Assembly: GCA_051294905.1 (NCBI GenBank)
Contig: CM119378.1
Coordinates: 19,716,001 to 19,780,000, forward strand
DNA length: 64,000 bases
Reading direction: 5' to 3'
Origin: Botryllus schlosseri
Lineage: Eukaryota
This document shows, piece by piece, positions 37,501 to 43,475 of this stretch. Below the pieces are notes generated by a model. It ran no database searches and had not been told where the DNA came from. It saw only the letters and a list, made by a program, of their open reading frames with translations. The position numbers and the translations under genes are program-made. Numbering within the stretch: the first letter of the stretch is position 1; every line of letters starts with the position of its first letter.

Positions 37501-39928
37501 GTATAGGTCACATCTTTGATGCGAGATTAATTCCTCTCCGATATGGAATACCATGTATCCATATCTTTCTTGTCCATTTTGGTTGATGCTGATGTATTAC
37601 GGTTGGATGGAAAATCAAAATTCTCTCCCTCTCTCTCTCTCTGTTTGTGTCTCTGTCGCTCTACCAAGTCCCACCAACAACCCATACTCTGTAATCCGAA
37701 GGTTTGAAAGAGGCACACAATTGCGTCGAATCATACTTGTACAAAGTAGCCATTTAGTTACCCAACTGTTTTTTGAGTAGTTCAATATTTCTAGTTCTGG
37801 TTGCAGATCTTGAAAATTCAGTATAGTTCTAGTTATCGTTCTAGTTGCGCATATGAAAAATATTAGTTGCCGAACAACGGGAAATCAGTTGTCGTCGTTT
37901 TGCGTGAATCGAGATACCGGTGTTCTGCTGAATGATATTTATGCAAATGTGCAGTCATTGAAAGCTCGTAGCCATCACTGCTAACACTGACGTAGGCCAC
38001 GGGCGGATTTCTTTGGTCGAAATCTCGCCAGTTCCAAACTCGAAATCCATACAGTCCTTTTGAAATGGCAATTCTATGTTCGATATTTCTGATAACATAA
38101 TGTCATTCTGTTGTATAGGAGAATGAAGTCCAGTTCAATACGGTTCTTAATATTCAATGACTAGGGCATCCTTACGCCAGAGATTGGCAATTATTTTTCT
38201 GATAATGAGAAGCACTGAAAATACGTTGGCGGGTTAAGTAAAAAGTTTACACTATATTCTGCGGTGTCCTTATTTCTAATCATTTAAATACTGAAAGCGC
38301 TGAATTACGTTTTTAACACAATCTTCTGAGTGGATGTATTACTTTTAGCTAATTAGGAAGTTAGAGATTAGGTTGATGCACGAAAATAATATTTATACGC
38401 CACCTAATTATTCAAAACAATGGTAGACAAGAAACAGTGTTAACTCTTGTAAATCACACCAACCCCAAGACACGTCCTTACATTAAAACATCAACATGTA
38501 TGGGATATTACAACTTGGTCACTACAAGCGGTGTGTAACTTGGTGAAATAGCCTTGTTGTGTCGGTAGTTTTGCAGGCAGGTTTTCCGAAATTCACCTTC
38601 TCGCAGCCTCAGCGTGTTTATGTCATAATTCCGACTTAAATTAACTCATTATATCGATTATTTTGAATACAAATTACGCATACGACAGACGTAGGCTACG
38701 TAACCACGTTGAATAAATATAAACACTAAACAGCCTTCAAAGTAAACGCATTTCCGGCTCAATTTATACAGCCCATGGTTTTAGACGTACACATTCAAAT
38801 GTATGGTTCATAATTCAGAACAACTTTTCGCGGTTCGGATTGGGCCCACGGGCCGTAAAATGCCAGGTGTGCCCTACGCTTATCTGCAAGCCTACGGGGA
38901 ACCCCTAATTTTCAGGGAGTCACACAAACAAAAATCCACCACATATTACACATATAAGAGCACACTTGACTTGATACATTACAAACATAATGCGCCCGGA
39001 AACACCGGTCAAGAACCACTGATGTAGTTCGTTGCCTTTTAGTTAGTTACGTATTTTTAAAGGTTGCTAGTTCTAGTTCTATAGTTGCGAGTTCTAAAAA
39101 TAGTTTTTACAAGTCTGCGTCGAATACGTGCAAGCGACTTCTTATCGTAGTCAGTTGTCGCAAAGCAGATCGTGTCAGCGCGATTTATTAGTATTATAGT
39201 CATAGGTGACTCATAAAACCATTTACTTGAATACTTTACAGTTATTCATCATTTTCCACATCTACTTGGAGCAGAGATTTTGAAATAGCTACATAGATTG
39301 GATTTGAATGGGCATTCAGGGCGTTACTTCTTCTATCTGAGTATAGCAACGTTGAATAAGTTACCACCATTGCGTATCATACAATGGAAAACACGAATCA
39401 CTGATATTGTGTCGTCAGACGATGACTTGAAGCAGTCATTTTAGCATACAATTTTCCCTAATAATTGAAGAGAGCTTTTTATTATTGTTATCAGATAGGC
39501 CTGCTGCAAAGTATATATGAGTTTTGTAACCGATCATTGTTAGTTGATACCAACTACAAAATAATAATAATGTGCGATAGTGGCAAGGATAGTTGAAAAT
39601 ATCTCAAACGAAATAAGAAGATAAATCTTTACACTAACACACAGTAGATTGGTAGAAACATAAATTAATGCAACACCCAACGCGACAAATCCAATTTGCA
39701 CGTTGAAAGCCGAATCTACATCGTCAAAGTAGACACTGGCAATCACATAAGATGTCAGCTTACGAGCGTAAAACGCCATTCCATTCAAAGCCGCTAGTAT
39801 TCCTAAAATGTACAGAGACGATGTCGATGGTTGCCATATCAATGCTATACAACACAATATCATCTCCAAAGTGAAAGCCAGCCAACACAGAATAGGAATT
39901 GAGATCCTAGAACTGAAATAGTTATACA

Positions 39929-41250
39929 CAGGCCGTGTTATTTTTGGCAAATGCCAAAACTGCCAAAAATAACTTATTTTTGGCATTTTTCAATTTTTAT
40001 TTTTGGCAGTTTTGGCATCGTCCTCTAAATAGATAGTTTCAGCCTCGAATTAGTCACAAAAACGCTTTATTTGAGCTAGTTTGTCAAAAGACACCACAAA
40101 ATGTGCAGCATCCACGCATAATCAGTGCCAACAAACAATAAGAAGAAGAAAAAAACTAACGATTTCATAGGTTAATAATATCAAACGAAACCACAAAATG
40201 TGCAGTATCCATCGGAATAGGTGCCAAAACGCAAAAAAAAACACAAGCCTAACAAACACGTTCAACAGCTGATTGTCACAGCTGTTGAATAGACTTAAAT
40301 CGTTTGCGCTGTAACAGTGCCTACAAAATCAGGTGAGCTAAGTTTCTCCTAAATTCATTTCTCGCCCTACGAATCTGGGAAATATCGGCTTCAACAGTAG
40401 CCGTTGAGAGAAAGAATGTTGCCAGTCATCCATAAAAGGTTTTCAGAGCTTCAAAATCTTTGGAGGGCTAAACCGGCTTCCATGCATCATGAAAAGAGAT
40501 CACTTCGCCAGTGCCATTGATCTCATCGCGGAAGGAATTTTCTTCCCGATCTTTTTCCAGGAGTTTCCCGTGTTGTATCTCAACACATTCTATTTAGTAG
40601 CCCGACTATCATTTCTCCTTCAGTCTACCGATATATTTTCGGAGGACTTTTGTCACTTCAGGTGGCGTTAATATTACTAACTCGCATGGAAGAGTCCTGG
40701 AGTCCTGTCTGGCAAAACGAGCCTATGCAGCTCAGAAATAGCCAGACAGTTTGTTGCGTCACAGTGTTCAACTTGATCACAATGCAAAAATTGTGGTGGA
40801 TTTTGGGGGTTCCAGTTCCATGAGCAGAATATAATTTATATTTTAATAATCAGTACTGCGGCAGCTTCTCATTGATACCCGTTTTATCTAATTTAGCGCT
40901 CGACAAGCCGGTCAAAAATGGTCGTAAAATTTCCTTTGGACAAATGGAAAGTATGACGTAAACCAAATGCAGTCAGCCGTTCAATCTCGCTGTGCCCACA
41001 CCATTTAGGACACCATGCTTTCACTCCTAATGGGTGGGCTGGACCCAGATTAAGAAACCTGCCTTTCACAAACGCTCTTCTCGCTTGTAACGCGGTCCTG
41101 TTAACACAACACCATGAACGAAATACACTATTTGGCAGGCCGTGTTATTTTTGGCATATGCCAAAAATTGCTTATTTTTGGCATTTTCAAATTTTTATTT
41201 TTGGCAGTTCTGGCATCTGGCTCCTGAAATGCCAAAAATAACACGGCCTG
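39929..41250 (-). mobile_element. Internally deleted hAT element inserted in the UNC93A-like CDS
   Basis: TIRs CAGGCCGTGTTATTTTTGGCA / TGCCAAAAATAACACGGCCTG; perfect TSD GTTATACA (39921-39928, 41251-41258). Confidence 0.95.
40276..40700 (-). pseudogene. hAT-like transposase C-terminal relic inside the insert
   Basis: One frame with stops: LPCELVIL...IECVEIQHGKLLEK...SFHDAWKPV*...FEALKTFYG*LATFFLSTATVEADISQIRRARNEFRRNL, resembling the recalled LPHELV / GLATVFPGTATVESDFS family. Confidence 0.7.
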
Positions 41251-42366
41251 GTTATACACCATATTAAACACGAATCCACTTGCATAAGTTACCACAAGAT
41301 AAACACCAAGATTTTGAACACCGACCGTACATGAAATGTAAGCTCGATCAAATTCCGACCAGAAGAATCCACATACAAAGCCGTACTGCAAGTGTATAGG
41401 AATCGTTAGTATTTGCAGCTTCGATCTCATGTGGTGTAAAACTCGAAGGAATGAACTTTTTAATGCAGCACAAGCTATCCCTGTTTTATTAGGCCTAAGA
41501 AGAGACTGTTCCTCTTCAGAGTCCACTTCTGGTGCTTTTTTATCGGCAGGAATAGCGATGACGTGAATCAAAATACCAAAAATCTGAGTGCCTGCAAAGC
41601 AACACAGATAAATATCCAGTGAATAATTGCTAGGAGTCAATTTTCCGAACATTGTAGAATTCGTTGAGAACGCATATTCCCCAGAACAATCAGAAGCGCC
41701 ACATTTCGATATATCCGTCAAATTATTACTGCTAAAAATTGTCCATTGACTGTCGCTGTCTTTCAAGATAAACTCCGGTAGAATACCAGCGGCAGTTTGT
41801 GCCAATGCCAGGATGGCAAGAAAAACACCCATATTATAAGACTTGTCTTTTTCATTGCCCGACTCAGTTTCGCAGTGATGTTGTGACGGTAAAGAACTGA
41901 CCATCGATGCTGCTGCTGACATCACCAGACTTTCACCAATTCCCATAATTGCTGCCGCCGTTGCTACAGTCCAAAATCGTGGGAGAAGTAGCGATAGCGT
42001 GTATCCCAAGAGCGATATCTCACCGGCAATTAAGCAGATTTTTCTTCCGAACAAGTGGATTAGTGGAACGTACACTAATATTGTTGCTAGGCATAATATT
42101 TGATATACCAAAACCGTCGTTGAGCCAAGAGCGTCCTGCACACCGATACTTGTCTGCATGCTCAGTAAATTGGTCTGCGGAGCTACAGTTAATGCAAAAC
42201 CCACCGATATCGCATACAGTATCATATTTAGCTGCATATTGTGTCAATCGTAATCAATTGTGTCTCTTTTCCGTGCGATAATGATCTTAAAAATATTCCC
42301 TGCTATTCGCAATGGCGTCACCGAACTCAGTAACGATAGCAACGAGATCAGCCATAAAGTCTTAAC

Positions 42367-43475
42367 CAGAGATGCCACTGGGATATTTCGGAAAAACCCA
42401 GATGTGGACGCTAAATAAACCCAGAAAAACTTAGATCCTCTATTACACTCAAATTGCTATGAAATCGCTCTGAAACTGGAAACTGAGAGTTACTATTATA
42501 CGCTCATGCAGTAATAGAAGTAAGTTTGACCCCTTGATATTGAAATTTCAAATAAGGTTTATACCAGTACTATACATTTTGCTCGGTTAACACTGCAAAT
42601 CTCACGAAAATATCTTGCTTTCCTCTCAACGCATTGCTATGAAAAAATTGGTGCTCGGCGTCAATACACAATAGTGTACAACTGTACAATGTACTGTAGG
42701 GCCTACATGTACAAGTAGCCTACACCGTGCCGAGAATGATCGAAACAATGCTATATTCATTCCCCATCTCTGATCTCTGAGGGTGATTTCGGGTATTTCC
42801 ATGCAGTGATCGGACCAGTTGAAAGTAGCTTTCGGTTGATTAATCCTGGGACAATGTGGCAGGCATGTTTAGTCGAAAAATCTGACCAATCATGAAATTC
42901 AGGGTATATTCGAATATGCTGATAACCAACACCTCTGACTAAATTAATAGTTGGGGGTGTCCGACTCTCTCTCTCTCTATCCCTGTTGGAAGTGAATATA
43001 CTCAGATACCCATGTGCATAATATACAGTTACATATTATTTTTTGATACACGACAAATTTATTGGAGTGATATAGCATTCAAGTCTTATATCGTTTTAAA
43101 TTGTAAGAAAACGGTTCCAACGAGTTGCCCTATGAACATGATTTTTGCGACCTTGGAAGTTAGTATTCAATGAAGTTCCATCGCATCACACCGAGGCCTA
43201 TCATTTTACAATAACTCGTTACGCCGTTACAATAACAACGAAATTTATCGACCGTTCTAGATAGCCCTGCAATGGCGAACTGATTCTGAAGTAGGCCTAT
43301 GTGCATTTTACGACATTATGATCTCACTAATCTAATAATTAATTTTCGAGCGTAAAATTGACCTGACGAACATGATCTCGAAAGAAACCCAGATTTACAG
43401 AACAAAACCCCAGAAACCCAGGTGATGCTCGAAAAACCCAGATCTGGGTGGAAAAACCCAGGAGTGGCATGTCTG
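42367..43475. mobile_element. hAT-like non-autonomous element just upstream of the UNC93A-like ATG
   Basis: TIRs CAGAGATGCCAC / GTGGCATGTCTG; aaacccag subterminal repeats; flanks share only 4 of 8 bases (gtcttaac / gtctggga). Confidence 0.6.

Follow-up and report, generated by a model that had tools for sequence, protein, structure and literature searches.

An intronless UNC93A-like gene of the major facilitator superfamily (MFS) in Botryllus schlosseri is interrupted, on the assembled haplotype, by a 1322-bp hAT-like transposon, and the exact empty site occurs on two other haplotypes, one of which carries point-mutational lesions of its own. The gene lies in the window, by which is meant the whole stretch of 64,000 nucleotides analysed here (assembly GCA_051294905.1, contig CM119378.1, positions 19,716,001 to 19,780,000), and positions are given in its numbering. 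Very probably this is an ordinary cut-and-paste insertion whose truncating null allele is still segregating with the empty site and with a point-mutational null. A non-autonomous hAT-type element would have entered the coding exon by cut-and-paste, creating the usual 8-bp target duplication. The carrier haplotype would from then on encode only transmembrane helices (TM) 1 to 8 and a 40-residue tail supplied by the element, and would segregate beside empty-site alleles, one apparently intact and one with its own nonsense and frameshift mutations. The polymorphism of the insertion and the second null haplotype are new here, the kind of event being already known.

Interrupted and empty-site alleles

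The element (39929-41250) splits a minus-strand open reading frame (ORF) of 455 codons after codon 329. It starts with CAGGCCGTGTTATTTTTGGCA and finishes with the reverse complement of the same sequence, giving perfect 21-bp terminal inverted repeats (TIRs), and on both sides it is bordered by a perfect 8-bp direct repeat, GTTATACA (39921-39928 and 41251-41258), the target site duplication (TSD). The ORF opens with an ATG at 42237 (an in-frame TGA lies 9 nt before this codon), runs for 329 codons to 41251 and continues beyond the element for 126 codons from 39920 to 39543, with its stop at 39540-39542. Excision in silico of the element with one GTTATACA copy yields 455 sense codons and one terminal stop. 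With the insert in place the ORF (41128..42237) encodes 369 amino acids, from 329 codons of the gene and 40 of the element. A preliminary description made from the letters of the window had reported a 1322-bp element with 21-bp TIRs and a perfect TSD, 329 + 126 = 455 codons free of any other stop or frameshift, and a 369-residue product reaching 40 codons into the element; every one of these details is present in the sequence. The features are as follows.

41251..42237, minus strand: 5′ part of the UNC93A-like coding sequence, codons 1-329, TM1-TM8; matches Pfam MFS_1 and UNC-93; its final 8 nt are the right TSD copy
39540..39920, minus strand: 3′ part of the coding sequence, codons 330-455 and stop, TM9-TM12; colinear with intact paralogues, with support from hydropathy and a paralogue model
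39929..41250, no strand assigned: putative non-autonomous hAT-like transposon, 1322 bp; both ends match the 3593-bp element L071, and there are at least 38 near-full-length copies
39921..39928, no strand assigned: left TSD copy, GTTATACA, 8 bp
41251..41258, no strand assigned: right TSD copy, GTTATACA, 8 bp
39929..39949, plus strand: left TIR, 21 bp
41230..41250, minus strand: right TIR, 21 bp, perfect complement of the left TIR
41136..41250, no strand assigned: unit of 115 bp resembling a miniature inverted-repeat transposable element (MITE), at the element's right end; the terminus recurs there a third time, in direct orientation (41136-41156), facing the right terminus
40279..40656, minus strand: decayed remnant of a transposase C-terminus; 76% amino acid identity to ORF3 of L071 in tblastn, 5 stops
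41128..41130, minus strand: stop codon ending the interrupted ORF after 369 amino acids
41338, minus strand: G>C in the X1 empty-site haplotype, codon 300 Tyr to stop; depth 17/17
41457..41461, minus strand: T5 run, one base fewer in X1, causing a frameshift near codon 260 and a stop at codon 270; depth 17/17

Two DNA runs from different samples and different studies, X1 and X4, join position 39920 directly to 41251, and the 1330 nt that are skipped correspond to the element and one target copy (1322 + 8). Nine letters fit either side of this joint, which retains one 8-bp target copy and no footprint. X4 contains a 453-nt contig that starts at 39540, crosses the joint and continues for another 72 nt, at a depth of 71.8 that equals that of the flanks; that this run is DNA is evident from its longest contig of 131 kb and from its even depth over the intergenic flanks. 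X1 yields a short bridging contig with 21 nt on the far side, and two long flank contigs, one ending exactly at 39929 and the other starting exactly at 41251. Since these break points lie where the occupied and empty alleles diverge, and since the lengths are those of a k=31 assembly bubble, the presence of both alleles in X1 is suggested. In their flanks X1 and X4 depart from the window sequence at about 1% of sites, and they are unlike each other as well; X1 in addition has two 109-nt variants at 42090-42198, one of them identical to the window. With all three flanks distinct, the data must represent three or more haplotypes, which takes at least two animals. The empty sites are ancestral unoccupied alleles: their presence in DNA shows that they are not splice products, and the clean joint together with the linked differences shows that they are not excision revertants. 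Read mapping across 39920/41251, which the preliminary description had put forward as a check, thus reveals the empty site with an exact joint, and the polymorphism it had envisaged is found on two other haplotypes in two DNA runs.

The X4 haplotype, as read over 91% of the ORF in the listed contigs, has seven substitutions with four amino acid changes (F168S, N250T, G253E and I405T), no stop and no indel, and its ORF is apparently intact. The X1 haplotype has nine substitutions, among them the 41338 G>C change that produces Y300*, plus the 1-nt deletion in the T5 run, and is a second, independent null allele. Two or more null alleles of unrelated origin are accordingly segregating at the locus together with one that looks intact, and pseudogenisation here is multi-allelic. 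The earlier proposal that the insertion could be the first step of pseudogenisation needs correcting on this point, since X1 already carries an independent nonsense mutation and frameshift. The ratio of nonsynonymous to synonymous polymorphism (pN/pS) among the three haplotypes is 0.4-0.76 (at most 9 sites), as against 0.21-0.27 for two pairs of paralogues, which suggests relaxed constraint at the locus from counts far too sparse for a neutrality test. The corresponding ratio of substitution rates against the nearest paralogues (dN/dS), also proposed beforehand as a check, is affected by saturation of dS.

The transposon and its relatives

In its own 495-Mb genome the element has at least 38 near-full-length copies at 91-98% identity. 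A perfect 8-bp TSD borders 27 of 30 sampled copies and a TSD with 1 mismatch one more, and the TSD sequence varies from copy to copy, which shows spread by transposition rather than duplication. The perfect 21-mer terminus is found 987 times in forward and 976 times in reverse orientation in the genome (1963 in all), its reversed control 0 times, and there are 3 occurrences in the 64-kb window where 0 are expected. These counts against the control, together with the TSDs of 27 of the 30 copies, show that the structure of the element is not due to chance. In all 29 perfect TSDs position 4 is A and position 5 is T, whence the consensus NNNATNNN, often with TATA (copies L001-L030, L071 and L072).

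The spacing of perfect termini on contig C1 led to a 3593-bp relative, L071 (G000:C1:23865138-23868730), with the same termini and its own perfect TSD, CATATTAG; a 2.0-kb relative, like this 3.6-kb one, is bordered by a perfect 8-bp TSD. Positions 1-733 of the window element match L071 at 87% and positions 777-1322 at 78-95%, the intervening 2.4 kb being absent from the window element. The interior of L071 holds three adjacent ORFs of 260, 308 and 126 amino acids, between which lie a single in-frame stop and a single frame change. A Pfam hmmscan of these three ORFs at E<=0.1 matched no family, the hAT dimerisation model PF05699 included, and the small ORFs within the window element likewise gave no Pfam match. 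In a protein-language-model search the 308-residue ORF2 groups with FAM200/ZBED5/GTF2IRD2/DUF4371 clusters (0.90-0.93) and the 126-residue ORF3 with Dimer_Tnp_hAT clusters (0.94; 94 of 100 hits), and all of these clusters are hAT-derived. The ends shared with L071, the hAT-like ORFs of the latter and the transposase remnant identify the element, as judged from sequence, as non-autonomous and as derived by internal deletion from a 3.6-kb hAT-like transposon.

This assignment agrees with published hAT criteria, an 8-bp TSD, TIRs of 10-25 bp and an autonomous size of 2.5-5 kb (PMC3942097): the 21-bp TIRs, the 8-bp TSD and the 3593-bp parent-like element all fall within them. Like the non-autonomous hAT elements of the Ds type and the Drosophila BuT2 and mar MITEs (PMC3942097, PMC3517528), the window element has conserved ends and a deleted interior; it departs from them in that its right end is a complete 115-bp MITE-like unit and in that the hAT link of its parent's ORFs is drawn from language-model similarity, the Pfam dimerisation model giving no score. 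Ac-group elements have the target motif nTnnnnAn, from which NNNATNNN differs. It differs likewise from the nnnTAnnn of TcBuster (PMC3499496), which touches the subgroup and not the superfamily.

In an alignment of 30 copies, 3 of the 1322 nt of the window copy carry substitutions private to it; such changes set the maximum that can have arisen since insertion. The window copy diverges by 1.6% from its nearest relative, L002 (98.4% identity), and by 3.2% from the majority sequence; pairs of copies in the 30-copy sample diverge by 4.3% on average. Its private changes also amount to less than the divergence of about 1% between the flanking haplotypes. The few private changes, the perfect TIRs and TSD and the empty site in the population make the insertion young, and it is still segregating; presumably it is also recent in years. 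The recent date claimed in the preliminary description is supported by both the private substitutions and the empty site in the reads.

Other forms of the family were observed as well. An abundant short form of about 120 bp, in which the two ends of the element are joined (40019->41220), occurs in the read contigs. In the bulk RNA run X23 there are reads from other copies of the element on both strands at 95-99% identity, most of them entering other flanks; at one or more genomic sites, the family is either transcribed or read through. Genome-wide matches to the hAT dimerisation domain amount to 2620 first-look candidates, many with open frames of 600-930 amino acids. An autonomous partner was sought among the PF05699 matches, and the element terminus was present in 0 of the 30 best loci.

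The UNC93A-like family and the predicted effect of truncation

The 329-residue N-terminal piece matches Pfam MFS_1 with 33 bits and UNC-93 (PF05978) with 27.4 bits, above the cut-off of 22.9. Its paralogues score 24.5-33.1 bits on UNC-93, one of them spanning profile positions 22-376 of 379. Intronless paralogues at 41-50% identity number about 13 in the genome and those at 25-31% about 15, several of them with stops; the intronless UNC93A-like MFS set to which the window gene belongs comprises about 25-30 paralogues. The restored protein of 455 amino acids aligned over its full length with seven intact paralogues, and the alignment is ungapped at the junction. A word-index protein search with the 329-residue piece returned no match; the family was found by an exhaustive profile search, in which 982 cluster representatives matched the paralogue profile at E<=0.001. 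Of the relatives that bear a name, the closest are annotated as 'protein unc-93 homolog A-like' in Styela clava (XP_039254111.1) and Ciona intestinalis (XP_078482005.1), a fish UNC93A-like protein lies further out, and distant profile relatives score 43-104 bits on Pfam UNC-93. Searches for an intact allele in the protein library gave a best match of just 43% identity, those for a haplotig or second copy of the locus in the assembly gave none, with the next protein match at 49-50% identity, and a sequence search of the PDB with a paralogue query gave no match.

An AlphaFold2 model was made for the paralogue L034, which is about 50% identical to the window gene, from a 79-sequence alignment. 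The model has 12 TM helices, with a predicted local distance difference test score (pLDDT) of 91 and a predicted TM-score (pTM) of 0.91. Its five best Swiss-Prot fold matches are all vertebrate UNC93A (TM-score 0.81-0.84), followed by fly and worm UNC-93, MFSD11 and UNC93B1. The UNC93A-like assignment made in the preliminary description holds at the level of sequence and predicted fold, by the Pfam score above cut-off, the NCBI names of the ascidian relatives and the ranking of fold matches.

UNC93A is an orphan atypical solute carrier (SLC) of MFS type (PMC5627054, PMC5671512, PMC7591606). With vertebrate UNC93A, e.g. human Q86WB7, the window gene has in common the 12-TM MFS fold and a length of about 455 amino acids, although identity is just 17-21%. 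It further differs in belonging to a set of about 25-30 intronless paralogues, several of them pseudogenes, where vertebrates have a single gene, and in a conserved Cys-containing, N-glycosylation-rich loop between TM5 and TM6.

Two arrangements of paralogues elsewhere in the genome deserve mention. At G000:C2:34071302-34183900 there are six tandem copies of a paralogue fragment with a period of about 21.7 kb and the same three stops in each, and this array is a pseudogene amplified inside a larger tandem repeat. At G000:C7:19104377-19118119 an inverted pair, L032 and L033, lies about 12 kb apart with one member intact (445 amino acids) and the other bearing a TAG stop, which is further evidence for birth-and-death turnover in the family.

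Residues 329/330, between which the element is inserted, correspond to 336/337 of L034, in the last turn of TM8, and the hydropathy of the restored ORF agrees with the 12-TM layout of the model. The interrupted allele would thus keep TM1-8, gain 40 unrelated residues and lose TM9-12; both hydropathy and the mapping onto L034 bear out the earlier expectation that the last several transmembrane helices are removed. Because an MFS protein needs both of its six-helix halves, we infer a loss of function, and the truncated product is almost certainly null.

Alternative explanations and significance

Several observations weigh against a segregating knockout by a recent insertion. The depth of the X1 bridging contig (18.3) equals that of its flanks (17-18), a value better matched by a sample in which the insertion is largely or entirely absent than by a 1:1 heterozygote, so that X1 may or may not be a sample that carries it. 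None of the listed read contigs crosses a junction between flank and element, and read support for the insertion itself is indirect, coming from the X1 break points and the anatomy of TSD and TIRs. The three haplotypes seen do not allow allele frequencies to be derived, and 26 further sequence differences are unlisted, among which a lesion in X4 is possible. An intact transposase of the exact family was searched for in the assembly and none was found; L071, its own frame broken, is the only close transposase-bearing relative there, the next ones being 75% identical with several stops. The bulk RNA run X23, of which about 6% was read, has 0 reads on either exonic part, and the gene could already be silent. 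In X6, which may be a DNA or an RNA run, low-depth contigs are identical to the window over 41892-42231.

One alternative is that the gene was a dead pseudogene before the element arrived and that nothing was knocked out, which overlaps in its consequences with a segregating transposon null and which we regard as improbable. The nonsense mutation and frameshift of X1, the missing X23 reads, the higher pN/pS of the haplotypes relative to the paralogue pairs and the several pseudogenes among the paralogues all speak in its favour. Against this, the carrier haplotype has kept 455 codons in AT-rich DNA without any other lesion, X4 looks intact, and the polymorphism is too scanty for a test of neutrality. 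The gene has moreover retained the invariant residues and the length of its family at only about 50% identity to the nearest paralogue, and together with the lesion-free 455 codons this calls for long purifying selection until recently. It is very unlikely that the element is spliced out or partly exonised like a newly gained intron, so that the carrier would make a working or near-complete protein. Introns derived from DNA transposons are known in some eukaryotes, and in-frame GT...AG pairs do exist around the element, one of them removing exactly 1330 nt (41242 to 39913). The candidate donors are nevertheless weak, matching at most 5 of 8 consensus positions, the paralogues are intronless, X23 provides no read on the gene in which splicing could be seen, and the joined form occurs in DNA runs and is therefore an allele.

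Since hAT elements move by cut-and-paste, excision occurs, and the empty sites might be revertants of an old insertion, with the 'intact' alleles secondary. This too has very little probability: the joint restores exactly one 8-bp target copy with no footprint, linked sites on either side of the joint distinguish each empty haplotype from the carrier (about 1%), and the inserted copy has almost no private changes. That a repeat copy was misplaced into the gene during assembly gains something from the high copy number of the element and from the lack of a junction-spanning contig among those listed, and is extremely unlikely all the same. A misjoin would not produce a complete element with perfect TIRs, a perfect 8-bp TSD and the central AT of its family; the ends of the X1 flank contigs coincide exactly with the two points at which the carrier and empty alleles part; the 21-nt overhang of the bridging contig is that of a k=31 bubble; and the copy has a sequence of its own, 98.4% identical to the nearest relative.

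A segregating transposon null, which we prefer, follows the same principle as classical transposon-insertion null alleles, i.e. an interrupted exon, a TSD and segregation with the unoccupied site, and is distinguished from them by the second, point-mutational null that segregates at the same locus. The locus would appear to be dispensable or under weak constraint within a large birth-and-death family, and the insertion and the X1 null together suggest that the loss of individual members is tolerated in this expanded intronless family. This amounts to ordinary gene turnover in a large family and leaves current understanding unchanged; polymorphic transposon insertions in multigene families are to be expected in highly polymorphic marine invertebrates. 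As a marker, the presence or absence of the insert can nonetheless be genotyped cleanly, the carrier allele is a natural null of an orphan UNC93A-like transporter, and the site documents a 1.3-kb hAT derivative that moved recently enough to be polymorphic. More tentatively, and we consider this rather doubtful, functional and null alleles may persist here as a standing polymorphism of three or more classes (transposon null, nonsense plus frameshift null, and intact), the sequenced animal perhaps being a natural compound knockout. Such a polymorphism would mark a tunicate-specific intronless UNC93A-like expansion as a fast birth-and-death family resembling chemoreceptor or immune-receptor families, with members individually dispensable or conditionally useful.

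Upstream of the gene, a repeated sequence at 42302-42428, 65-190 bp from the ATG, reaches depths in the thousands in the DNA runs, and no TIR or TSD structure was found when it was checked for these. Contigs of X1 skip 138-172 nt ending at 42568 (42395-42568), and 6 nt at 42253-42260 are skipped in both X1 and X4. These upstream skips look like indel polymorphisms in a putative promoter.

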